A stretch of DNA of 64,000 nt from Malacoraja senta (taxonomy: Eukaryota), in the NCBI GenBank assembly GCA_038087875.1, contig CM075978.1, positions 181,536,001-181,600,000 on the forward strand. Reading direction: 5' to 3'. Shown piece after piece: positions 1,868 to 54,379 of the stretch. How positions within the stretch are numbered: position 1 is the stretch's first letter; each line of letters begins with the position of its first letter. The notes under the pieces were generated by a model, which had not been told where the DNA came from, made no database searches, and worked only from the letters and a program-made list of their open reading frames with translations. A program made the position numbers and the translations under genes.

Positions 1868-3755
1868 TCCTGAGCCGCCATTCGCCGTATTTCAGTCACA
1901 GTCACAGAGGCTGACGTCAGAAGATCCTTCAGGGGGGTGAACCCTCAGAAAGCGCCTGGACCTGATGGCATACCCGGTCGTGTTCTAAAAACCTGTGCGG
2001 ACCAACTGGCTGGAGATTTTACGGACATTTTCAACCTCTCACTTCTGAGGTCTGAGGTTCCCACCTGCTTTAAAAGGGCATCAATAATGCCGGTGCCCAA
2101 GAAGAGCAAGGTGACGTGCCTCAATGACTATCAACCAGTGGCACTAACGTCTGTGGTGATGAAGAACTTTGAGATGTTGATTATGGCGCATATCAACTCC
2201 TACCTCGACAAGAACCTCGACCCACTGCAGTTCGCTTACTGCCACAACAGATCAACGGTGGATGCGATCTCACTGGCTCTCCACTCCGCTCTGGACCACT
2301 TGGACAACAAAAACTCATATGTCAGGCTGTTATTCATTGACTACAGCTCAACGCCAAGGCTCGGTGGGGGAGGGCCAAAGTCTAGGGTCCTTCCGCTGCT
2401 GGACATGGGGGGCACGGTATGGTGGAGACGCCCCTCACAATAAGGGAAGGTATCCCATGCCAGGGGGCCACATGAGTGGCACGGGTGGGGGACGGATCTG
2501 TGGAATTGGAAAAAATGTATTAACTGCATTGAACAACTTGTATAGCCTCCGAAAATATCGGATGAATTTTTTGCACGGTTCACGAATTGTATATATTTAT
2601 TACTTGAATAAAGTCTATTTTGATATTAAAAAATTGACTACAGCTCAGCATTTAATACCATCATCCCCTCCAAGCTGGTTACCAAGCTCTCAGATCTGGA
2701 TCTCTGCGCATCCCTCTGCAATTGGATCCTCGACTTCCTCATCCACAGAACACAGTCTGTCCGTATTGGTGGAAATGTGTCAGCCTTGATAACAATCAGC
2801 ACGGGAGCACCTCAAGGCTGCGTGCTCAGCCCCCTGCTTTACTCACTCTATACTCATGACTGCGTAGCTGGACATAGTTCGAACTCCATCGTCAAGTTCG
2901 CCGATGACACCACTGTTGTGGGACGAATCACTGATGGGGACGAGTCAGAGTATAGAAGTGAGATCGACCGATTGACCAAATGGTGCCAGCACAATAATCT
3001 GGCTCTCAACACCAGCAAAACCAAGGAATTGATTGTGGACTTTTCAGGGGGTGGATAGGAACCTACAATCCAGCAATCAATGGGACGATGGTGGAAAGGG
3101 TCAAGAACTTCAAATTCCTGGGTGTGCATATTTCCGAAGATCTTTCCTGGTCCCAGCACACTGATGCAATTATAAAGAAAGCACATCAGCGCCTCTACTT
3201 CCTGAGAAGATTACGGAGAGTCGGTATGTCAAAGAGGACGCTCTCGAACTTCTACAGGTACACGGTAGAGAGCATGCTGACTGGTTCCATCGTGGCTTGG
3301 TTCGGGAGCAGAAAAGAATGCAGAAAGTTGTGACCACTGCCCAGTCCATCATCGGCTCTGACCTCCCCACCATCGAAGGGATCTATCGCAGTCGTTGCCT
3401 CAAAAAGGCTGTCAACATCATCAAGGACCCACCCCATCCTGGCCACACACTCATCTCTCCACTGCCATCAGGTAGAAAGTACAGGAGTCTGAAATCTGGC
3501 ACATCCAGGTTCAGGAACAGCTGCTTCCCCACAGCCATCAGGCTATTAAACACGCCATCAAACAAACTCTGAACTATAACAGCCTATTGCACTTTATCTG
3601 TTTATTTATGCGTAAATATATGGTCTATGCCATATAGACACACCGAACTGTTCTGTATTTATGCTTACAGTATTGTGTTGTGCTGCAGCAAACAAGAATT
3701 TCATTGTCCTATCTTGGACACATGACAATATACTCTCTTGACCTGACTTGACTTG
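1868..3755 (+). mobile_element. 5'-truncated Rex1/Babar LINE (RT domain to 3' UTR)
   Basis: ORFs with [38 protein letters not shown]; (CTTGA)n tail; AGGCC duplicated at 1863-1867 and 3756-3760; interrupts an old CR1 fragment. Confidence 0.92.
2351..2632 (+). mobile_element. Short polyadenylated retro-insertion (L1/Tx1-type 3' end) inside the Rex1 RT
   Basis: 15-bp TSD ATTGACTACAGCTCA (2336-2350, 2633-2647); AATAAA and A-rich end. Confidence 0.85.
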
Positions 3756-4256
3756 AGGCCAATTTGGGATGAAAAAAGTGATCTTTGAATGCAGGACTTA
3801 AATACCAAATAAATACTTGGCACTTATGTGTGACATCAACCGCATCCTCTTTAGTGAAGATGATTGTAAGGTGGTAGAGGAAATGTAAAATATGAAAATA
3901 GATAAGCAGTGGTATTTCAAATGAAGATAACATTCAGATTTTAAAATGATTCACGGAGCAAGTAAGGGTGAAATTAAGGTCCCTCTTTGGACATAAATAT
4001 TTAGATTTTGGTTCTGAACTCACACCCTAAAGTTCCGTCTACAGGATACTTACTACACAAAGATCAATCACACCACATTGGATCAGAATTAATTAAAATT
4101 AAAAAAAAGATTTTACTCAGCCAAAATGCATTTACATCTGAGATAAACACAGTTGGATTCACAAGCCAAGTTTCATTTCTGTCCAAACATCACCATGAGC
4201 TCAATAAATCACAGAATGATTGTCGTACAGTTGAATAACTGCTGATTTTCCCACAG

Positions 4257-4392
4257 GTTCCAGCCCTGAATTCCTGATTGTGATGGAGTATTGTGAGCAT
4301 GGCAGCTTGCACAGTTTTCTGGAAGGCGAGTGGCATCTCAGCTGGCAGAGTCGTGTTCACATGGCATTGGATGCGGCCTGTGGCTTGTACAG
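4257..4392 (+). CDS. MLKL: MLKL pseudokinase exon (human exon 6 equivalent): xSSPEFLIVMEYCEHGSLHSFLEGEWHLSWQSRVHMALDAACGLYR
   Basis: cccacag|GT..AG|gtag splice sites, 136 nt, phase 1->2; translation matches the MLKL hinge region (IVMEYCE.G.L...GLYR). Confidence 0.93.
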
Positions 4393-4636
4393 GTAGCTGT
4401 TCATTGTGGCGTCGTAGACTGGGGGAAATGTAGAGATTATCCTGCCTCTCAACTGAAGGCTTTATCTCTGGATACTGCTCCTTAATCCAAAGCACGGAAT
4501 ATAGACAGTGGTTTAAGGTGCTGATTCCAACATGTTGGCACTGAGTATATGACAGGAACTACAACTGTGGACCTTTTAAATTCATTAGAACATCACAGGA
4601 GCTTCTCTGCAGAGAAACAATACCAGCATTTAGAAA

Positions 4637-6840: not shown

Positions 6841-6925
6841 GATGCACCAATCAACAGAGAAGTTCAAACTCCATTGCTCTATTGACAGCACCAGATTCCT
6901 GGTTGACAACGGTCTGAGAGTGAAA
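6841..6925 (+). CDS. MLKL: MLKL exon: (R)MHQSTEKFKLHCSIDSTRFLVDNGLRVK, degenerate catalytic loop
   Basis: tgcag|G..AAA|gtgag, 85 nt, phase 2->0, in frame with neighbours; HCS replaces HRD, as expected for a pseudokinase (human HGK). Confidence 0.92.
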
Positions 6926-7039: not shown

Positions 7040-7185
7040 CTGGGGGGCATGGACTTGGCAAAGACAGAAACCTCAATCCGACGAATCAGCACCTCCAGCC
7101 AGAAATCCCAGTTGTTGCCGTACATCTCACCACAGCAAATGAGCAACATCAACTACCAATACGACAAGCCCTGTGAGGTGTACAG
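7040..7185 (+). CDS. MLKL: MLKL exon: LGGMDLAKTETSIRRISTSSQKSQLLPYISPQQMSNINYQYDKPCEVY(S), activation loop
   Basis: ctttag|CTG..AG|gtgag, 146 nt; aligns with human LAGFELRKTQTS...YLSPQ..YQYD..EIYS. Confidence 0.94.
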
Positions 7186-9009: not shown

Positions 9010-9059
9010 TTTTGGGATTGTTCTTTGGGAGATAGCAAGCTGTAAAACACCTTTCAAAG
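9010..9059 (+). CDS. MLKL: MLKL exon: (S)FGIVLWEIASCKTPFK
   Basis: tttcag|T..G|gtaac, 50 nt, phase 2->1; kinase subdomain IX FGIVLWEIA. Confidence 0.94.
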
Positions 9060-10479: not shown

Positions 10480-12900
10480 CCACACGGACCGAGGCCATTC
10501 AGCCCACTGTCTCTGTACCAGTTGATGTAAAGCTGACTGGGATAAACACACATCCAGCACTTGTTCTGTAGACCTATAAGCCACTGTTCTTCAAGTATAT
10601 AACAAAGTTATGTTTATATGTGATGATGGTTTCTACCTCAAACACTCTTTCAGGCAGTGAATTTCAGATCTATCTGTGAAAGATTACTTCCTCATCTCCC
10701 CTCTAATCCTTCAACCAATTACTTTCAATCCATGGTCCTGGTTTATAATCCATCTGTTGAGGGAAATAGGTCCTCCTTGTTTATTTAATCCCACTATGCT
10801 TCTTAATGTATATTTTGCAATTAATTCTCCATTCACCGTATTTCTCTCAAAGATAACAGACCTAGTTTATTAAATTTCCTCATAGCAAAAATGTTCTAGT
10901 ACTGGAAATATCCTTATACATCCCCTGTGTATCCTCTCCAGTGCAATCACGTCCTTCCTGTAACGTGGTGACAAGAACTGTAAACAGTACTCAAACTGTG
11001 GCCGAAAAAAGTTCCATATACAGTGCCCTCCATAATGTTTGGGACAAAGACCCGTCATTTCTTTATTTGCCTCTGTACTCCACAATTTGAGGTATGTAAT
11101 AGAAAAATTCACATGTGATTAAAGTGCACATTGTCAGATTTTATTAATGGCCATTTTTATACATTTTGGTTTCACCATGTAGAAATTACTACTGTGTTTA
11201 TACATAGTCCACCCCATTTCAGGGCACCATAATGTTTGGGACACATTGTTTCACAGGCGTTTGTAATTGCTCAAGTGTGTTTAATTGCCTTCTTAAGAGC
11301 TCTCAGCACCAGTCTTTCGATTACCTTTGGAAACTTTTATTGCTGTTTATTAACATGAGGACCAAAGTTGTGCAAATGAAAGTCAAAGAAGCCATTATGA
11401 GACTGAGAAACAAGAATAAAACTGTTAGAGACATCAGCCAAACCTTAGGCTTACCAAAATCAACTATTTGGAACATCACTAAGAAGAGATAACTGGTGAG
11501 CTTACTAATTGCTAAGGGACTGGCAGGCCAAGGAAGACCTCCACAGCTGATGACAGAAGAATTCACTCTATAATAAAGAAACATTCCCAAACACCTGTCT
11601 GACAGATCAGAAACACTCTTCAGGAGTCAGGTGTGGATATGTCAATGATCACTGTCCGCTGAAGACTTAATGAACAGAAATACAGAGGCATCACTGCAAG
11701 ATGCAAACCACAGGATAGCTTCAAAAAATAGTATGGCCAGGTTACAGTTTGCCAAGAAGTACTTAAAAGAGCAACCACAGTTCTGGAAAAAGGTCTCATG
11801 GACAGATGAGATGAAGATTAACTTGTATCAGAATGATGGCAAGAGCAAATATGGAGGAGAGAAGGAACTGCCCAACATCCAAAGCATACCACCTCATCTG
11901 TGAAACACGGTGGTGGGGGTGTTATGGCCTGGGCATGAATGGCTGCTGAAGGTACTGGCTCACTTAACTTCATTGATGATACAACTGCTGATGGTAGTAG
12001 CATAATGAATTCTGAAGTGTATAGACACATCCTATCTGCTCAAGTTCAAACAAATGCCTCAAAACTCATTGGCTGGCGGTTCATTCTACAGCAAGATTTG
12101 ACCCCAAACATACTGTTAAAGCAACAAAGGAGCTTTTCAAAGCTAAAAAATTGTCAATTCTTGAGTGGCCAAGTCAATTACCCGATCTGAACCCAATTGA
12201 GCATGCCTTTTATATGCTGAAGAGAATACTGAAGGGGACCAGCTCCCAAAACAAGCATAAGCTAAAGATGGCTGCAATACAGGCCTGGCAGAGCATCACT
12301 AGATAAGACACCCAGCAACTAGTGATGTCCATGAATCGCAGACTCAAGCAGTCATTGCATGCAAAGGATATGCAACTAAATACTAAACATGGCTACTTTC
12401 AGTTACATGACATTGCTGTGTCCCATACATTATGGTGCCCTGAAATGGGGGGGGGGGCTATGTATAAACACTGCTGTAATTTCTACATGGTGAAACCAAA
12501 ATGTATAAAAATGGCCTCTATTAAAATCTGACAATGTGCACTTTAACCACATGTATTTTTTTTCTCAAATTGTGGAGTACAGAGGCAAATAAATAAATGA
12601 TGGGTCTTTGTTCCAATATTATGGAGGGCATTGTAGTTCAGCATAATCTCACTGCTCAGATATTCATACCTTGCCTAATAAAGGAAATTATCCCAAATGC
12701 CTTTTCCTCCACTTTTTGAACTATTTGCTTCATTTACGGATCTATGACACACACTCTCTGTTTGAGGTATTTAAGTTTCTCTTTCTCAATATTGTCCCAT
12801 TTAATGTACATTTCCTTGATTTGTTTCACCTCCCCAAATGCACAATCTCACAAATCGCTGGATGAACAATGAATTAACTCCATTTGTCATTTTACTGTCC
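10480..12900 (-). mobile_element. Old CR1 3' fragment split by the Tc1 element
   Basis: RPQFEYCLQFLSPRYRKDVIALERI translation; CR1 sequence resumes after 12635. Confidence 0.7.
11021..12633 (+). mobile_element. Full-length Tc1/mariner transposon with disrupted transposase
   Basis: TA|CAGTGCCCTCCATAAT...ATTATGGAGGGCATTG|TA, long (~220 bp) TIRs; HTH (DISQTLGLPKSTI), WTDE and DLNPIEH motifs broken by stops and frameshifts. Confidence 0.95.
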
Positions 12901-13250
12901 AGTTAATAGACTATATACATCTTTCTACATAGTTCATCACTTCTTCATCCATGCAATTCACATTTATCGCCCCGCACTCTATACTGGGCAGTGTGCCTTG
13001 TCTTAATCCATCACATGCCAGGTTGCTGCAAATCTGGGCTTTATCATTTAGCCTGGTTCCCTCACACCATGCTCACTGGATTTGTGGAAGGAGGCCTTGG
13101 ATTATGACCCTATAGAATACGAAGTTGAACATGGTCCAGCAGGTTTTTTGCTGCTCGTGCAGTTCTGATACAAATAATGACTCGGGTCTCACAACAGTTG
13201 AAGAATAGTGAACTATCACAACTGGCTTAACGTACACCCTCTTTGAGCAG

Positions 13251-13390
13251 ATTGCAGCAGTCAAGAGATCCGCAAAAAGGTCTGTGAGGAACGAGTCGTG
13301 AGCCTCTGCCAAGTGACTGCCCCAAGGAGCTTTGTGAGCTGATTGATGAATGCCGCGCTTATGATCCCTTTGAGCGTCCAAAGGCTGGAG
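13251..13390 (+). CDS. MLKL: MLKL penultimate exon [15 protein letters not shown]-[frameshift][30 protein letters not shown]
   Basis: gagcag|AT..GAG|gtagg; both halves match the MLKL C-lobe but in different frames (exon is 140 nt, phase 1->1 needs 3n). Confidence 0.9.
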
Positions 13391-13508
13391 GTAGGCAATG
13401 CTTTTGCAATTTGGAGATTATAAATGTAAGTTTTCGGGAAGCTGCAGATAGACTAGTCTGGGCCCAAATTGAGCTGTGAGAAATTGAGACGCCAGCAGAG
13501 AGAATTTT

Positions 13509-14007
13509 TGGAAGGACATTCTTGCTATTGAGGGAGTGCAGAGTAGGTTCACGAGGTTAATTCCCGGGATGGCAGGACTGTCATATGATGAAAGAATGGA
13601 ACGACTAGGCGTGTATTCACTGGAATTTAGAAGGATGAGAGGGGATCTGAGAAACATATAAAATGATTAAGGGATTGGGCAAGCTAGATGTAGGAAACAT
13701 GTTCCCAATGTTGGGGAGTCCAGAACCAGGGCCACAGTTTAAGAATAAGGGGTAGGCCATTTAGAACTGAGATGAGGAAAAGCTTTTTCACCCTGAGAGT
13801 TATGAATTTGTGGAATTCTCTGCCTCAGAAGGCAGTGGAGGCCGATTCACTGGATGCATTCAAAAGAATGGCTAGCGGAATCAAGGGATATGGGGAAAAG
13901 GCAGGAACGGGTACTGATTGTGGATGATCAGCCATGATCACATTGAATGGCGGTCTGGCTCCAAGGGCCGAATGGCCTACTCCTGCACCTATTTTCTATA
14001 TTTCTAT
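13509..14007 (+). mobile_element. CR1 LINE 3' end
   Basis: KDILAIEGVQ..FTRLIPGM; 3' UTR GGCCGAATGGCCTACTCCTGCACCTATTTTCTAT. Confidence 0.92.
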
Positions 14008-14629: not shown

Positions 14630-16100
14630 AAAGGTTCAAAGGTCTGTTTATTGTCACGTGTACCAATTAAGAGACAGTGAACTCGAATTACGACACAGGC
14701 ATACTTTTAAAAAAGCAACAAGACACATAACTACATAAAAGTTAACATAACATAAACATCCACCACAGCTGATTCCCCACATTCCTCACTGTGATGGAAG
14801 GCAATAAAGTCCAATCTTCTTCCTCCGACTGCGGAGGGCTCAAAGGCCCCGACCACGGGTAAACAAAGAGGGAAGATGACAAAACTTTATTGCCTTCCCT
14901 CAGAGTGGGAAACGTTGATTCCGCTGTGTGAGGATGTTCATGTTAAATTCTATCGTGTATTGTGTTATTTTTATTCATATGCCTATATGGGACCTCAAAT
15001 CTCACTGTACCAATTGGTGCATGTGACAATAAATGTAACTTGAACTTGAACTTTAGTCTCCCACGGTCGGGGCAGTCGAACCACCCGCAGTCGGGGCGAT
15101 CGAAGCTTCCGCAGACGGTGATCGGAGCCCCCACGTCAGGGCGATCGAAGCTCCCGCTTCGGGGCGGTCGAAGCTCCTGCGGCTTAGAGCTCCCGAAGTC
15201 GGTGTCTGACCAGGGACCGCGAGCTCCTTGATTTTAAAGTCCGCAGGCTCCCGCGGTTGGAGCACCCGAAGTCGATCTCCAGCAAAGGCCGTCAGCTCCT
15301 CGATCTTAGGCCACAGTGTGGACGGAGATACGATACGGACAAAAATCGCATCTCCGTCGTGGTAAGAGATATTTTTTTTAATTTCCCCCCAACACCCCCC
15401 CACATAAAACAAGCTTCTTAGGCTCCCTTCGGTCATGGCTGACCATGGGTGTCTCCAAGGTTGGAGGACGCCAGTGCATGACTTTGTTTAACGTGGGAGA
15501 CTGGTGCACAACAGCCACCACATGGTCCTTGACAGATCTGGGCCAGGATCCAGTGGAATGGAGTCCAAGACGACCCGGAGATCCTTTTCTGCTGCAGCCT
15601 TCATCCACCTTCCCAGCCGTTGTGACTCTCCACTAAGGGCCAATCATCCTCCGCCTGTTCCACCGTTGAGGCCTTGGTTGGATTGATCTTTGTCAGAGTC
15701 CTCCCCCTCGACCTTACCGCCATGGGTGGCCCTACCAGGAGCACAGCTCCAGACACCATCACTCTCAGGCTCCAGGACCACACAAGCTTCTCCACCACAA
15801 CAAGGTATCAATCCACAGGAGATGTTAAAGTCCGCAGGCTTCCGCGGTTGGAGCTCCCAAAGTCAATCTCCAGCAAAGACCACCAGCTCCTCGATGTTAG
15901 GCCACTGTGCGGACGGAGATACGATACGGACAACAATCGAATCTCCGTGTGGTAAGAATTTTTTTTTTAAAGTTTCCCCCAACCCACCCCCCACATAAAA
16001 CAAGCTAAAGAACACTAAAACATAAAAACATACGGAAAACCAACAAAGAAGGGACAAGACAGACTGTTGGCGAGGCAGCCACTGCGGCACCACCCGGTGG
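14630..16100 (-). mobile_element. Composite GC-rich non-autonomous element with Rex1-type tail, carrying nested insertions
   Basis: Tail rc(TGTGACAATAAA..) at 14630-14660; head CCACCGGGTGG.. at ~16100 shared with ~26075; nested + copy 14827-15052; RTE-like insert 15416-15820. Confidence 0.7.
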
Positions 16101-16424: not shown

Positions 16425-16492
16425 CTATCATGGACAGGGTGAAGAATATTCTAAAGAGAATTACTGAAATAACCAAAGAAGCAAGGGATTGA
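16425..16492 (+). CDS. MLKL: MLKL terminal coding exon (A)IMDRVKNILKRITEITKEARD*
   Basis: Polypyrimidine tract + ttcag acceptor, phase 1; helix resembling human EILKKL; TGA at 16490-16492. Confidence 0.75.
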
Positions 16493-20290: not shown

Positions 20291-22172
20291 ATGCTAATGA
20301 GACCTGATTAGATCTATCCCGGTTTCCGCAGTGAGCGAGCTGAGCCTACCGGGCGGGTCCTCCGTCATCGGTCCACGGCGAGCCAGGCCCGCTTGCCGGG
20401 AGTGATCCAGTGGGTTGCTTGCTGGGAGAGTCCAACAAGTAGGAGTGATATAAAAGCAAAATAATGAGGACCAGAATGTTCCTAAAAGAATGTCAAAACA
20501 AAAAAAAAGGAACTTCTGATTATTCAAATAGAAACAAAAAATGCAGGAAACATTTCTGTGGTGGTCAGGGGTGTGAGAAGTCAGAATTCCCTCAGAGAAA
20601 GGGATGGGGAGAGCAAAGTGGAAATATCTGACCACCCCCTTATATTAAAACATTTAAGACATTTGGACAGCCATATGGGTAGGGAAAAGGGACATGGGTC
20701 GAATGTATGTAAACAAAATAAGCTTAGATGGGCATGGATAAAGTAGGGCTTAAGGGCCTGCTTCCATACTATATGAATCTATGACTGAAACTTAAATAAA
20801 CTTACTTTTCTAGCTCTGATGAAAGGTACTTGACCCAAAATGTCACTTTCCTCCCCAATGGTGTGCCCCAACCTGGTGAGTGATTCCAGTGGGAATGCAA
20901 TCATGTTGAGTGGATTATGTCCCATACATGCAGCCCCATTACTTTTCTTGTCATATTTAAATGAGCTTGGATATTGGACATAAACTTCAATGTCTGCACA
21001 AATCCAGTAATTCAACAACTTCGCCGTTAATAAGCGCAGAAGGGGAAAATATCAGGTGAAAAGAGCAGATACATGACAGATTATTTAATGGAGAAATTTA
21101 TGAAGCAATGCCATTTGAGAGCTATTCTCAAAGGATTGTGAAGCCAGAGCAACGTTTGGTGTATGTTTACAAATTTTAAAGGAGGAACAGCAAGTAAGGG
21201 AACGTATAAAAGCTGGTTTTATAACAGGGAAGTGAAATAGGGAAGGATTAAGACACCACTTAAAAAAAAATATGTCTAGTTGGTTTGCAAGATAAAGAGG
21301 GAAGTATACTGTGATCATTCTTGACACAAGGGAGTTCTGTTATCTGGGAACTATGGAGATCCTGAGCTTGTTCTGAGAACAAGGCAGGCTCAGGGAAAGT
21401 ACAACACAGGTTCAATACCTTAAAAGATGTTTTAAAGCAAGAATGAAAAAACTATTTCCTTTATCAAGGAGAACAGCAACTCAAAGGATATCGTTAAACT
21501 GGGAAGGGTACAAAATAGATTCACCAGGATGTTACCAGAGTTCGAAGGCATGAGTTATAAAGAGAAGCTGGATAGGCAATGTCTTTTTGGTCTGAAGCAC
21601 AGGAGATCTTTACCCCATATAGAGGTATAGAAAATTATGAAGAGGCATCGATAAGGTGAATGGACAAGGTATTTTTTTCCAGGATAATGGAGCCCAGAAC
21701 TTGAGTGCATAGGTTTGAGAGGGGAAAGATTTAAAAGAGACCCGAGGGACAATTTCTTCATTCAGAGAATAGTGCATTTAAGGAATGAGCTGCCAGAGGA
21801 AGTTGTAGAGGCAGGTAAAATTGTGACTTTTAAAATACATTGGGTCTGAGTTGGGTCAGATTGCCCGTTTCCATGCTGCATAACACTTTGGCTCTAATTG
21901 GTGAATGAACTGGAGACAAAATGAGAACACCTTGAACACAGAAATATTGTTAAGATCTGCTACACACTGTCTGAAAGGATGAAGGAATGAAGATTTCAAA
22001 GAAACTTTAAAAGGGCGATTATACATGGGCACGACAGATCCAGTTTGCAGGATGCTAAAAGGGAAGTCGTCATGGTACAATATCGGGTTCCTCATCCAAA
22101 GATCCGAGATATGCATGACATGTTGACCAGATACCTCCGATGTAAGATTTTATATTTCTGTGAATTTTGTCG

Positions 22173-31463: not shown

Positions 31464-33246
31464 ACAGGAGGGAATTATTCCCTGTTTATGCTAAAACATG
31501 AGCAATGAGCAGATAAAAAGCAGGCATATGCAAAGAAATGCTATGGAATAGCATAATCTATACATAAGCAGACAGAGTAATTGATGATGAATGAGGAACA
31601 ATGTATTTTGATATCAGTGTGGTTTGGTGCTTTTGGTTTGGATAATGAGGAGTGTGTTTCACCTGGAGTTGCTCTTGAGCCCAATATATTCTAATTCCTT
31701 TTCACTTACAAAGAAAGCAACAACAGATTCTACACTTGCAAAAGTGAAATCACGAATCTATGATTGCAGCTTATGGTGGCTTGCTTTCACGTTAGAGGTC
31801 AGGTACAACTGTTGGTTTATTGAGGTGACTACAGATGCAAGTTGGAGTGAGTTTTGGCTGGCCTGGCTTTATAACCTCTGCTGGGCGATAAGGTACAGTA
31901 TGTTTCAGTTTGGGACATTATAATGATGCAATTATAGAACACCATGTGCTGGTATCAAGTTGGAGCCCCGTGAGTCGATGGAGCCTGGGTCGACAGAGCC
32001 TGCGGCTGGGGCCTGGGTCAGTGCCATGGAGGCGTCAGGAGAGGACCCGGCGGTGAGGTCGGTCAGGCGGTCGATGAGGACGCCAACCGACGAACGAGAA
32101 CGGACCACATGGGAGTGAGGACGCTGCTTGCCAGGGGGAGGAACAAAGGAGGACCCGGCATGGGGGGACTGCCGTGAAGGAGGGGGGAGAACAATGGGGA
32201 CCCGGTGTGCGGGGACAGCTGCGACTCTTGGTTCTGGACTCCAACATCGGGAACATTTTTCATGCATCTAGCCTGTGCAATCCCTTAATAATTTTATATG
32301 TTTCTATAAAATTAGGAATAGGAATACTTTATTGTCACATGTGACGAGGCGCAGTGAAATTCTTTGCTTGCATACCCAATGTATACAAATAGCAGCCACC
32401 AACCGCGCTGACAAAGTTACCAAGCACGCCGGCTCCTCCTTGAGGCATAGACAGAATAGACAACCAGACCCTTTCCCAGGGTGGAAATGTCAAATACTAG
32501 AGGGCGTAGCTTTAAGGTGAAATGAGCAAAGTTTAAAGATATGTGAAATAAGGTTTTTATTGAGGGTGGTGGAGCATGCTGCCAGGGGTGGTGGAGTAAA
32601 TACGATAATGGCATTTAAGAGGCTTCTTGATAGGCACATAGATATACAGGGAATGGAGGGATAGAGATCACAATATTGAGGGTGAGATCAGAAACCTACA
32701 AAACTTTTTTTTTGCTTCAAGTAATCACATATCTTTTTTATTTAAATCACTGATCTATTTTATTTCCCGTTTACAAGTACAATCAGAATTTTCTGTTAAC
32801 AAATGGCAGCTATCGCCCGAACTCACAACCGATACCTCTTCTACATGCTGCTGTTGGGAGGCTAGTCAGTGCCAATAAAGTATTGTTTTCATAGCAACCA
32901 TACAGGTTCAGTAGGAAATGACCGGGACATCACATAATTGACCAGTGACTGCCCAGCCTTAATCAATTCAGGGTTATTTTATACTTTCCAAGGCAAATTG
33001 TGCAAGGTTGCAATATTTAGAGTTGTGCACATTGCATCGAGTCAGTGATGTTTATCATTATTTCCTTGGTGAAAGTATCAGGAAATAAAAATGAACAGTG
33101 CTTATAAAACAATGTCTCTGTGAGGATCATTCAATTTCCAAATGGTACCATGGCATGGTGTATGTTTTGCTATTTGTTTAATTGTGAGTGATTTGATCAT
33201 CCCTGAGACTTTCCACGTGAGATGGTTGTAGAGACATAGATGGTTG

Positions 33247-34934
33247 GAAGACATAAATAATCTGCCGGAAATAGCAGGGGACCGCGGGTCAAAGGAGATG
33301 GAGGAACTGAGTGAAATCCAGGTTAGTCGGGAAGTGGTGTTGGGTAAATTGAATGGATTAAAGGCCGATAAATCACCAGGGCCAGATAGGCTGCATCCCA
33401 GAGTACTTAAGGAAGTAGCCCCAGAAATAGTGGATGCATTAGTGATAATTTTTCAAAACTCCTTAGATTCTGGAGTAGTTCCTGAGGATTGGAGGGTAGC
33501 TAAAGTAACCCCCCTTTTTAAAAAGGGAGGGAGAGAGAAAATAGGAAATTACAGACCAGTTAGTCTAACATCGGTAGTGGGGAAACTGCTAGAGTCAGTT
33601 ATTAAAGATGGGATAGCAGCACATTTGGAAAGTGGTGAAATCATTGGACAAAGTCAGCATGGATTTACGAAAGGTAAATCATGTCTGACGAATCTTATAG
33701 AATTTTTCGAGGATGTAACTAGTAGAGTGGATAGGGAAGAACCAGTGGATGTGTTGTATCTGGACTTTCAGAAGGCTTTCGACAAGATCCCACATAAGAG
33801 ATTAGTATACAAACTTAAAGCACACGGTATTGGGGGTTCAGTATTGATGTGGATAGAGAACTGGCTGGCAAACAGGAAGCAAAGAGTAGGAGTAAACGGG
33901 TCCTTTTCACAATGGCAGGCAGTGACTAGTGGGGTACCGCAAGGCTCAGTGCTGGGACCCCAGCTATATACAATTTATATTAATGAGCTGGATGAGGGAA
34001 TTGAAGGCAACATCTCCAAGTTTGCGGATGACACTAAGCTGGGGGGCAGTGTTAGCTGTGAGGAGGATGCTAGGAGACTGGAAGGTGACTTGGATAGGCT
34101 GGGTGAGTGGGCAAATGTTTGGCAGATGCAGTATAATGTGGATAAATGTGAGGTTATCCACTTTGGTGGCAAAAACAGGAAAGCAGACTATTATCTAAAT
34201 GGTGGCTGATTAGGAAAAGGGGAGATGCAGCGAGACCTGGGTGTCATGGTACACCAGTCATTGAAAGTAGGCATGCAGGTGCAGCAGGCAGTGAAGAAAG
34301 CGAATGGTATGTTAGCTTTCATAGCAAAAGGATTTGAGTATAGGAGCAGGGAGGTTCTACTGCATTTGTACAGGGTCTTGGTGAGACCACACCTGGAGCA
34401 TTGCGTACAGTTTTGGTCTCCAAATCTGAGGAAGGACATTATAGCCATAGAGGGAGTGCAGAGAAGGTTCACCAGACTGATTCCTGGGATGTCAGGACTT
34501 TCATATGAAGAAAGACTGGATAGACTTGGTCTATACTCGCTAGCATTTAGGAGAGGGGATCTTATAGAAACGTACAAAATTCTTATGGGGTTGGACAGGC
34601 TACATGCAGGAAGATTGTTCCCGGTGTTGGGGAAGTCCAGGACAAGGGGTCACAGCTTAAGGATAAGGGGGAAATCCTTTAAGACCGAGATGAGAAAAAA
34701 CTTTTTCACACAGAGAGTGGTGAATCTCTGGAACTCTCTGCCACAGAGGGTAGTTGAGGCCAGTTCATTGGCTATATTTAAGAGGGAGTTCGATGTGGCC
34801 CTTGTGGCTAAAGGGATCAGGGGGTATGGAGAGAGGGCAGGTACGGGATACTGAGTTGGATGATCAGCCATGATCATATTGAATGGCTCGAAGGGCCGAA
34901 TGGCCTACTCCTGCACCTATTTTCTATGTATCTG
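33247..34934 (+). mobile_element. Young 5'-truncated CR1 LINE with nearly intact RT
   Basis: 321-aa and 209-aa ORFs (KSPGPD, YLDFQKAFD, GVPQGSVLGP, KFADD) in the same frame, separated by one TGA at 34207. Confidence 0.96.
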
Positions 34935-42974: not shown

Positions 42975-45900
42975 ATGAGTTCTCCAACATGAGTTCAGAG
43001 AGTTGGGAAGAAGACTGAAAAGCCGGACTTCTAGGGTGGTTATCTCTGGATTGCTTCCAGTACCTCGTGCGAGTGAGGACAGGAACAGGGAGATAGGGGA
43101 TCTGAATGTGTGGCTGAGGGGCGGGAGCAGGGAGCAAGGATTTAGATTTATAGACCACTGGGATCTCTTCTGGGGTAGGGGTGACCTGTACAAAAGGGAC
43201 GGGTTAAACCTTAACTGGAGGGGAGCCGACATTCTGGCAGGCAGGTTTGCTAGGGCTACACTTGTGGGTTTAAACTAAATAGTGGGGGGGGGGAGGGATT
43301 GATAAATTGGGAGTATAAAGATGGAGTTGAAGGGGAAGTGACTACAGGAAAAATTACAAAAGATTCTCAAATTAATGGGAAGGAAAGCTCGAGAAAGGAC
43401 AACAGAGTAAGGTCAGGACCAATTGCGAGCGGTGCGAGGGGGGAAGTGAATACGGAGGTCAAAGTACTGTATATGAATGTGCAAAGTATAAGGAATAAAG
43501 TGGACAAGCTTGAGGCTCAGTTTGAAACTGGCAAGTATGATGTTGTGGGAATTACTGAGACATGGCTGCAAGAGGGCCAGGGCTGGGAACTGAATATTCA
43601 AGGGTATACCTCCTATCGAAAAGACAGACAGGTGGGCAGAGGGGGTGGGGTTGCCCTGTTGGTGAGGAATGAAATTCAGTCCCTTGCAAGGGGTGACATT
43701 GAAACAGGAGATGTGGAGTTAGTATGGATAGAACTAAGGAATTGTAAGGGTAAAAAGACCCTAATGGGACTAATCTACAGGCCCCCAAACAGTAGCCTGG
43801 ACATAGGGCGCAAGTTGAATCAGGAGTTAAAATTGGCATGTAGCAAAAGTAATGCTGTGGTTGTTATGGGAGATTTCAACATGCAAGTAGACTGGGAAAA
43901 TCAGGTTGGTACTGGACCCCAAAAAAGGGACTTTGTAGAGTGCCTTCGTGATGGATTTTTAGAACAGCTTGTATTGGAGCCTACCAGGGAGAAGGCAATT
44001 CTGGATTTAGTGTTATGTGATGAACCGGATTTGATAAAGGACCTCGAGGGTTAATGAGCCATTAGGAGGCAGTGACCATAACATGGTCAGCTTTAATCTA
44101 CAATTGGAGAGGGGGAAGGGTAGATCGGAGGTGTCAGTGTTGCAGTTGAATAAAGGGGACTATGGGGCCATGAGGGAGGAGCTGGCCAAAGTTGACTGGA
44201 AAGATACACTAACAGGGATGACAGTGGAACAAAAATGGCAGGTGTTTCTAGGAATAATGCAGAAGGTGCAGGATCAGTTCATTCCTAGGAGGAAGAAAGA
44301 TTCCAAGGGGAGAAAGGGACGACCATGGCTGACAAGGGACGTCAGGGACAGTATAAAAATTAAAGTGAAGAAGTACAACGTAGCAAAGATGAGCAAAGAT
44401 CATCTTTGCTACGTTGTACTTCTTCACTTTAAGAGGATTAGGTAATGTTTAAAGAACAACAGAAGATAACCAAAAAGACAATACGGGGAGAAAAGATGAG
44501 GTACAAAGGTAAGCTAGCCAGGAATATAAAGCAGGATAGTAAAAGCTTCTTTAGGTATGTGAAGATGAAAAAAATAGTTAAGACCAAAGTTGGACCCTTG
44601 AAGACCGAAAAAGGTGAATTTATTATGGGGAACAAGGAAATGGCAGATGAGTTGAACAGGTACTTTGGATCTGTCTTCACTAAGGAGGACACAAACAATC
44701 TTCCTGATATAGTAGTGGCCAGAGGATCTGGGGTGACAGAGGAACTGAAGGAAATCCACATTAGGCAGGAAATGGTGTTGGATAGACTGATGGGACTGAA
44801 GGCTGATAAATCCCCAGGGCCTGATGGTCTGCATCCCAGGGTACTTAAGGAAGTGGCTCTAGAAATCGTGGATGCATTGGTGATAATTTTCCAATGTTCT
44901 ATAGACTCAGGATCAGTTCCTGTGGATTGGAGGGTAGCTGAAGTTATCCCACTTTTTAAGAAAGGAGGGAGAGAGCAAACGGGGAATTATGGACCAGTTA
45001 GCCGGACATCGGTGGAGGGGAAGATGCTGGAGTCAATTATAAAAGATGATAGCGGCACATTTGGATAGCAGTAACAGGATCGGTCCAAGTCAGCATGGAT
45101 TTACTATGGGGAAATCATGCTTGACTAATCTGGGATTTTTTTAGGTTGTATCTAGGAAAATGGACAAGGGAGAGCCAGTGGATGTAGTGTTCCTGGACTT
45201 TCAGAAAGCCTTTGATAAGGTCCTACATAGGAGATTAGTGGGAAAAATTAGAGCACATGGTATTGGATGTAGGGTACTGACATGGATAGAAAATTGGTTG
45301 GTAGACAGGAAACAAAGTGTAGGGATTAACGGGTCCCTTTCAGAATGACAGGCAGTGACTAGTGTGGTACCGCAAGGCTCGGTGCTGGGACCGCAGCTAT
45401 TTACAATATACATTAATGATTTGATGAAGGGATTCAAAGTAACATTAGCAAATTAGCAGATGACACAAAGCTGGGTGGCAGTGTGAACTGTGAGGAGGAT
45501 ACTATGAGGATGCAGGGTGCCTCGGAATGGTTGGGTGAGTGGGCAGATGCATGGCAGATGCAGTATTTTGTGGATAAATGTGAGGTTATCCACTTTGGTG
45601 GCAAGAACAGGAAGCAGATTATTATCTGAATGGTGTCAAGTTAGGAAAAGGGGAAGTACAGTGAGATCTGGGTGTCCTTGTTCATCAGTCACTGAAAGTA
45701 AGCTTGCAGGTGCAGCAGGCAGTGATGAAAGCTAATGGCATTTTGGGCTTCATAACAAGAGGAGTTCAGTATAGGAGCAAAGAGGTCCTTATGGAGTTGT
45801 ACAGGGCCCTAGTGAGACCACACCTGGTGTATTGTGTGCAGTTTTGGTCTCCAAATTAGAGGAAGGACATTCTTGCTATTGAGGGAATGCAGCGTAGGTT

Positions 45901-46376
45901 CACGAGGTTAATTCCCGGGATGGCAGGACTGTCATATTATGAACGAATGGAGCGACTGGGCTTGTATACACTGGAATTTAGAAGGATGAGAGGGAATCTA
46001 ATTGAAACATATAAGATTATTAAGGGATTGGACACGCTAGAGGCAGGAAACATGTTCCCGATGTTGGGGGAGTCCAGAACCAGGGGCCACAATTTAAGAA
46101 TAAGGGGTAGGCCATTTGGAACGGAGATGAGGAAAAACGTTTTCACCCAGAGAGTTGTGAATCTGTGGAATTCTCTGCCTCAGAAGGCAGTGGAGGCCAA
46201 TTCTCTGGATGCTTTCAAGAGAGTTAGATAGAGCTCTTAAAGATAGTGGAGTCAAGGGATATGGGGAGTAGGCAGGAACGGGTTACTGATTGTGGATGAT
46301 GAGCCATGATCCCAGTGAATGGCGGTGCTGGCCCAAAGGGCCGAATGGCCTACTCCTGCACCTATTGTCTATTGTC
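42975..46376 (+). mobile_element. Long CR1 LINE: ORF1 C-terminus (SGNH esterase-like) and ORF2 APE endonuclease + RT, with frameshifts and stops
   Basis: DGLNLN motif; YMNVQSIRNK, GITETW, MGDFN (APE); KSPGPDGLHPRVLKE, FLDFQKAFD; CR1 3' tail CTATTGTCTATTG. Confidence 0.96.
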
Positions 46377-53324: not shown

Positions 53325-53549
53325 GAAAGCCTGGCCTTGCATTCAGAAGTATTAAATGTGAAAAAAGATGACCCAAGTCCACAGGCTACCAGTATGGTCT
53401 CTGATGATGAAGGAGATACTTGCTCCATCTGTTTTGAGCCATGGACGAATGCAGGAGAGCATCGTCTTGCTGCTCTGCGATGTGGCCATCTTTTTGGGTT
53501 TACCTGCATTGATCGATGGCTGAGGGGACAAGGAGGAAAATGTCCACAG
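53325..53549 (+). CDS. RFWD3: RFWD3 exon 5, RING finger [43 protein letters not shown]
   Basis: ccctag|GAA..CAG|gtaat, 225 nt; diagnostic RFWD3 RING sequence. Confidence 0.97.
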
Positions 53550-54379
53550 GTAATTCTGCAGCAAGATATTGGGGATGAAAAGCAAAAATTTGCATCTTAA
53601 GGTTTCCAAGGGAGTACAATGGGATTATGTTCTGATTTTTTTTTTTTTTTTTTTAAACAAAGGAAATAATTTTGTTTGGTGGTTATGTTAGATTCTCAGT
53701 GACTTTCACCTGGATGGTAAAAATGGATCCATGGAGCGTTGGACTTTATGAACTGAGATGCAAAACTGCCTATCTTAGTTTTTGTCTATCTGAAGGAGTG
53801 GCCGTTCATGCAATGAGTTTACTCAAAGAAGATTGTTTGGGATATCAAGATCATTGAGTAACGTGAATAGAGCCAAAAAGAAGAATTGGGGTGAAGGTTC
53901 AACCATAATCCCACTGAATGACAAAACAAGCATAAGGGCCTTGTGATTTCCTCTCCTTTCTGTTCTTAACTATGTTACATCATACTTTGTTAAAATCTTG
54001 ATCTATAGATTTTGAGAGGGAGAGATATGAATGTATGGAGCAATCATTGATAAATGAAATGTAGCCGGAAGGTCTCTTGTGATCATGCCAGATTGGGCCA
54101 CGTCTCCAGCTTAACTGGTGCTCTACTTTATTCAGGGTCTTGCACCTTTTTAAATCAAAATGAGAATGTAATTTGAAGAAAATCAAAATTGGAGTTGCAA
54201 AACTGCCAGATGAATCATAAATTTCACATGGGTTATTGGGAAAGGATATTTAAAGATTGTGAGGGAAGACATTTTTGATTGTTTCCCTGTAAAGCCAAAC
54301 TTGGTTTGCAAAGAAAATTGAGACTAATTTTAATTACTAAACCACAACCATGCTAAAAGACTCTTTTTGGATTTTGCAG

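Follow-up and report, generated by a model that had tools for sequence, protein, structure and literature searches.

The locus described here raises the question whether a skate has lost the executioner of necroptosis, or whether one missing base in a single exon has another origin. Mammalian MLKL is a pseudokinase, in which phosphorylation by RIPK3 frees an N-terminal four-helix bundle to rupture membranes. The window, by which we mean the whole stretch of 64,000 nucleotides of Malacoraja senta DNA that was analysed, had originally been predicted to carry an MLKL gene with a one-base deletion in its penultimate exon, under the heading of a possibly lost or truncated necroptosis effector. The last six coding exons of MLKL were located on the + strand, at 4.2-16.5 kb of the window:

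4257..4392, + strand: MLKL pseudokinase exon SSPEFLIVMEYCEHGSL...GLYR, the first inside the window, with a CAG/G acceptor and an AG/GTAGCT donor
6841..6925, + strand: MLKL exon with the degenerate catalytic-loop region, KLHCSIDSTRFLV, found by tblastn to skate MLKL, splice sites read
7040..7185, + strand: MLKL exon with GMD replacing DFG and with the activation loop, found by tblastn, splice sites read
9010..9059, + strand: MLKL exon FGIVLWEIASCKTPFK, its 3' end being one base of the next codon, placed by alignment to skate MLKL
13251..13390, + strand: penultimate MLKL exon, 140 nt (141 nt in three other skates), from the sequence, tblastn and nucleotide alignments
16425..16492, + strand: last MLKL coding exon AIMDRVKNILKRITEITKEARD, coding to 16489, then the stop at 16490-92

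These exons correspond to about residues 278-485 of the protein, the N-terminal exons (residues 1 to about 277) being situated upstream of the window. When the exon translations were compared with solved structures, MLKL was the best match for four exons and the sole match for three of them (E = 2e-6 for exon 4257..4392, 3e-7 for the 31-residue piece from 13297 and 4e-4 for exon 7040..7185), and exon 6841..6925 gave a weak yet collinear match to solved MLKL, aligning to LH(R/G)..SS.FLV. A profile-free search of 1.8 billion proteins with the exon translation 4256-4393 led to vertebrate MLKLs, and with a bamboo-shark protein as the follow-up query annotated MLKLs of sharks, rays and skates were among the matches listed. 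The window exons are 91-100% identical to the annotated skate MLKL proteins (tblastn), exon 4257..4392 reaching 100% at the protein level with both Leucoraja erinacea and Amblyraja radiata. The orthologues contain PF22215 MLKL_N in their N-terminal part, and collinearity with the MLKL loci of three skates extends over 1-23 kb of the window. Judged by homology and by position, the gene is the skate orthologue of MLKL, an ordinary family member at the orthologous place, and in this respect the original prediction was borne out by the structure matches and by the identity to the annotated skate proteins.

The pseudokinase character of the encoded domain can be read directly from its motifs. Neither HRD nor DFG is found: LHCSID stands at the kinase HRD position, where LHCSIDSTRFLV is aligned with LH..ISS.FLV of solved MLKL, and exon 7040..7185 is aligned to human MLKL 347-396 (LAGFELRKTQ...), where LGGMDLAKTE of the skate places GMD at the GFE / DFG position. 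The activation-loop region at 7090-7125 varies between skates by in-frame 3-nt indels; compared with the window and L. erinacea, one Ser codon is missing in A. radiata and one Leu codon in Rhinoraja.

Other features of the window were also recorded. Long ORFs of LINE-type reverse transcriptase lie at 1870-3500, 33200-34850 and 43250-46230, in an MLKL intron and between genes; nearly uninterrupted ORFs of 325 and 214 residues are found in the copy at 33.2-34.9 kb. Further downstream a RING-finger exon was recognized on the + strand at 53325-53597, with a likely first coding exon at about 48.1 kb; an atlas search with the RING exon gave generic RING-finger clusters only, and the two exons are consistent with a candidate RFWD3.

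The core of the question is the penultimate exon, in which two sites had to be distinguished:

13295..13299, + strand: frame-break site, five bases where orthologues have Val-Arg codons, defined by a tblastn overlap and a one-base gap
13340..13342, + strand: premature TGA of the entry frame, 48 nt upstream of the last junction (13390)

The leftover base of exon 9010-9059 and the start of exon 13251-13390 form an Asp codon, from which the entry frame runs for 29 residues (15, then 14 foreign) to the TGA. The conserved continuation, 31 residues from 13297, is in a different frame, and the two tblastn pieces obtained against skate MLKL proteins overlap at base 13297. Since the entry and exit phases of the exon need 2+3n+1 nt, which 140 nt does not fit, the frame is broken across the exon. 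The exon is 141 nt long with an open frame in the genomes of L. erinacea, A. radiata and Rhinoraja longicauda, and its nucleotide alignment to these three contains one one-base gap, within the two codons for Val-Arg: the orthologues have a run of two bases at this point and the window a single base. Thus the predicted deficit of one nucleotide proved correct on comparison with the orthologous exons of three skate genomes, the position of the TGA and its distance from the last junction were confirmed by direct reading, and the suggestion that this stop may escape nonsense-mediated decay is supported, 48 nt being inside the 50-55-nt rule. That rule is established and is quoted also in PMC7195448.

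This difference in the length of one exon stands out against an otherwise shared architecture. The MLKL genes of L. erinacea (XP_055504610.1), A. radiata (XP_032892006.1) and R. longicauda (XP_078257806.1) share with the window all six C-terminal exons, their order and their splice sites; protein identity is 95-100% per exon, their flanking introns are collinear with those of the window at 88-95% identity, and the boundaries of the penultimate exon are shared as well. In all skate, ray and shark orthologues compared, the motif ...CEE(R/K/Q)(V/F)RE(P/S)LPSDCP... is uninterrupted, and the break point is intact in the DNA of the three other skate genomes and in the four ray proteins that were examined. 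With the A. radiata MLKL, its 90% cluster contains also the L. erinacea protein and four Logan proteins; the latter, which are L. erinacea-like and come from contigs of 1.6-1.9 kb, read ...CEERVRESLPSDCP... without a break. Searches for other sequences of this species at the site were negative: a homologue search with the 63-aa open frame across the exon gave no candidates, exact look-ups of two window ORFs spanning or flanking the break had no match on record, partial skate products sought with the C-terminal 186 residues of L. erinacea yielded only a catshark and a damselfish protein and no transcript of the window species, and an MLKL protein of the window species was absent from the protein collection searched.

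According to the original prediction, the nearby alternative AG acceptors that had been tried do not restore an open frame. This has to be corrected, since one nearby AG does, although it is very weak:

13287..13288 (exon start 13289), + strand: cryptic AG that restores the frame by skipping 38 nt, a very weak acceptor

When the carried-over base of exon 9010-9059 is joined to 13289 onward, 12 residues are read in the conserved frame. The context of this AG is GAG/G, with a G at -3, the least favoured base at that position in vertebrate acceptors; 8 of the 20 upstream bases are pyrimidines, as against 12 to 19 at the six real acceptors. It is the sixth AG downstream of the authentic strong acceptor, so that five others precede it. 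L. erinacea and Rhinoraja have an identical surrounding sequence and A. radiata departs from it at 13283 only; in each of these three skates the use of this AG would destroy the frame. No other AG between 13251 and 13300 yields the conserved frame. Removal of a tiny intron from GTGAGC at 13298 to the AG at 13312-13 was considered as well and rejected, since 16 nt is far under any spliceable intron length.

In order to place the lesion in time, four-species alignments of the window, L. erinacea, A. radiata and Rhinoraja were used, comprising about 5.6 kb of introns and flanking sequence. L. erinacea and A. radiata are grouped by 92 shared derived sites and each alternative pair by 5, so that, on these alignments, the window represents a third rajid lineage, the sister group of Leucoraja plus Amblyraja, and Rhinoraja is the outgroup. 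The window branch carries 105 non-coding substitutions (1.9% of about 5.6 kb). In 626 coding nt the same branch has 3 changes, of which two are synonymous and one replaces Leu by Val; neutral evolution would predict about 12 (Poisson P = 0.003). Coding sequence has thus changed about four times slower than the introns. The MLKL of the window differs from that of L. erinacea by four amino acids, and three of these are the ancestral state common with Rhinoraja. The codon at 13273-13275 (R of EIRKKV) encodes Arg in the window and L. erinacea and His in A. radiata and Rhinoraja; this pattern conflicts with the species tree and is homoplasy or old polymorphism in a CpG-containing codon.

All ten splice sites in the window are canonical, the sequence downstream of the frame break shows no decay, and tests for relaxed constraint or additional lesions revealed a single lesion in the six in-window exons. 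The original statement that all other exons and splice sites are intact therefore holds for the five other in-window exons and their splice sites, its reach being the six exons of the window. MLKL has been under purifying selection for essentially the whole window branch. It follows from this constraint that the frame break is either extremely young or not real, which agrees with the earlier proposal of a very recent lesion, a polymorphic allele or an assembly error in an otherwise intact gene.

The neighbourhood of the break was then decisive. With 10-kb flanks, 16 kb were aligned to both L. erinacea and A. radiata, and small indels were polarised with Rhinoraja as outgroup in the four-species blocks. 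One segment is exceptional:

12616..13296 (681 nt), no strand: patch of seven one-base run-length differences unique to this assembly, from alignments with the other skates

The patch contains six deletions (12616, 12712, 12726, 12746, 13007 and 13296, the last being the frame break) and one insertion (13058). All seven events are changes in short runs, 1 to 4 bases long; the insertion lengthens its run and the six deletions make theirs shorter. Compared with both L. erinacea and A. radiata, seven one-base differences fall in these 681 nt and 21 in the remaining 15 kb. On the window branch, block 12634-13662 has 6 one-base indels (5 deletions, 1 insertion) and 9 substitutions, and the other four-species blocks have 3 and 96, respectively (Fisher's exact P = 1.3e-4). 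A permutation scan statistic gave P = 0.016 when all events were counted and 0.004 when deletions alone were; these cluster statistics are post hoc and of moderate strength. Substitutions show no corresponding excess in the patch. Outside it the ratio of one-base indels to substitutions in the window is about 0.03-0.04, equal to that of the other lineages, hence the patch is a local anomaly and the assembly is not generally poor.

A degraded Tc1/mariner-like transposon occupies 11100-12560, in the intron before the broken exon, and is present also in A. radiata; it has transposase-like ORF pieces in three frames and inverted matches at both ends. The patch adjoins this element and may include it. 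Compared with A. radiata alone, more one-base deficits occur inside the Tc1-like element at 11578, 11849, 12098 and 12343, and the affected stretch may thus extend over about 11.6-13.3 kb. One-base differences from both L. erinacea and A. radiata also gather, in lower numbers, at two other places, four at 15498-15819, in locally repeated sequence, and three at 21584-21670. Insertions and deletions are mixed in both clumps, and the outgroup is unaligned there; they could be further weak-consensus spots or alignment noise.

Taken together, the 140-nt exon is most likely a sequencing-consensus error and not a gene loss, a reading to which we assign a probability of roughly 75%. Its main argument is that the frameshift belongs to a local cluster of one-base differences. 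Under-called runs without additional substitutions are the usual sign of weak long-read consensus, or of failed polishing, near a repeat, and we infer that the cluster is technical rather than biological. In the proposed course of events, the lengths of short runs would have been under-called several times in a poorly resolved stretch of about 11.6-13.3 kb, adjoining the Tc1-like transposon of the preceding intron, and the real exon of the animal would be 141 nt long, encoding a full-length MLKL of about 485 residues as in other skates. Two observations speak against an error: the break is in a two-base run, long homopolymers being the commonest place of run-length errors, and some clumping of one-base indels is seen at other places as well (15.5-15.8 kb and 21.6 kb). 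It should be stressed that the frame break, although present in the assembly, is most likely absent from the animal itself. The heading under which the locus was originally reported, loss or truncation of the necroptosis effector, is therefore unsupported as a property of the species: the coding sequence is constrained and the break is part of an error-like cluster.

The alternative that deserves most attention is that the one-base deletion is real, in the form of a very recent null allele, heterozygous or polymorphic or just fixed; we regard this as unlikely. The break is present in the sequence as given, the lack of decay downstream of it is in keeping with a lesion of very young age, mammals have lost MLKL repeatedly (PMC8445033), and a human frameshift in the MLKL pseudokinase domain segregates without detectable protein (PMC7195448). 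MLKL tolerates loss, so a real null allele is not far-fetched. A second MLKL copy was looked for and none was seen in the window, nor was a second skate or ray copy present among the 120 matches listed. A real deletion would, on the other hand, have to coincide with six more assembly-unique one-base differences within 700 nt without an excess of substitutions, at two indels per three substitutions in place of a baseline of about 0.035 one-base indels per substitution; it would interrupt a gene constrained along the whole window branch, at a point intact in three other skate genomes and four ray proteins. That MLKL might be a long-standing pseudogene in this skate lineage, with lineage-wide loss of necroptosis, finds its sole support in the break itself and is excluded by the coding constraint (3 changes found, with one conservative amino-acid replacement) together with the intact exons and splice sites, one lesion being all that could be found. 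Just as improbable is rescue in vivo by the cryptic acceptor at 13287-88, giving an MLKL isoform without 13 residues but with the conserved C-terminus: joining 13289 to the carried-over base does produce the conserved frame, yet the acceptor is very poor, with a purine-rich upstream tract behind a strong authentic site and five AGs, its use would break the frame in three other skates, and the skipped residues are conserved across rays and sharks.

If the deletion were nevertheless real, the following consequences would be expected. The product would have about 446 residues, 432 native ones and a foreign tail of 14 (L. erinacea numbering), and residues 433-485, the last 53, would be missing. 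These align to human MLKL 431-458 and beyond, and by established knowledge of the fold they make up the two final helices of the kinase-fold C-lobe. With its stop only 48 nt before the last junction, the transcript would probably not be subject to nonsense-mediated decay. The C-lobe would likely be misfolded and RIPK3-controlled regulation lost, so that the protein may be unstable or unregulated and is probably null in effect.

The copy number of the gene bears on this conditional case. The sharks Heptranchias, Heterodontus, Mustelus, Scyliorhinus, Cetorhinus and Pristiophorus have a second MLKL paralogue with about 45% identity to the first copy, and in three of them it is on a chromosome of the same length as that of the first copy. 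As no second copy of skates or rays was seen among the matches listed, a real null would probably remove the only executioner of the pathway. It is doubtful that the sequenced skate carries, perhaps homozygously, a null or truncated allele of what is apparently the only skate and ray MLKL gene, but if it did, the necroptosis executioner of a cartilaginous fish would have been knocked out by nature, and the allele would have been sampled as it arose or shortly afterwards. Such an allele would be a natural tool for the role of MLKL in elasmobranch immunity, and a cartilaginous fish would join the mammal, bird and marsupial lineages in which loss of necroptosis genes is reported. A broad search of the literature on MLKL in cartilaginous fishes returned nothing relevant.

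As it stands, the main value of the case is cautionary: a constrained gene with a single frameshift in a patch of one-base differences should not be counted as a gene loss. The density of lineage-specific one-base indels around a lesion, compared with sister genomes, could serve as a test for other single frameshifts in this genome.

The closest known counterpart is the human MLKL frameshift rs561839347, a small deletion in the pseudokinase domain, which occurs at 0.42% in Europeans and leaves no detectable protein (PMC7195448). In both cases the frame is shifted inside the pseudokinase domain and the C-terminal part is replaced by a short foreign tail. The human stop, however, is far upstream of the last junction, and nonsense-mediated decay is proposed by the authors as a potential reason for the missing protein (PMC7195448), whereas in the skate it falls 48 nt short of the junction and would cost only 53 residues. 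The human variant is furthermore a Sanger-verified, naturally segregating null, while the skate break is known from one assembly alone. On the scale of whole lineages, carnivores have a deletion of MLKL, and the gene is broken in cetaceans and some rodents, with repeated losses among mammals (PMC8445033), in agreement with the earlier remark on its absence from lineages such as Carnivora. The mammalian losses of MLKL or RIPK3 (carnivores, cetaceans, leporids; PMC8445033) concern the same gene and the same kind of lesion, a frameshift or premature stop. They are, in contrast to the skate case with its one lesion in one assembly and its constrained coding sequence, clade-wide, based on multiple lesions or deletion, and checked against reads.
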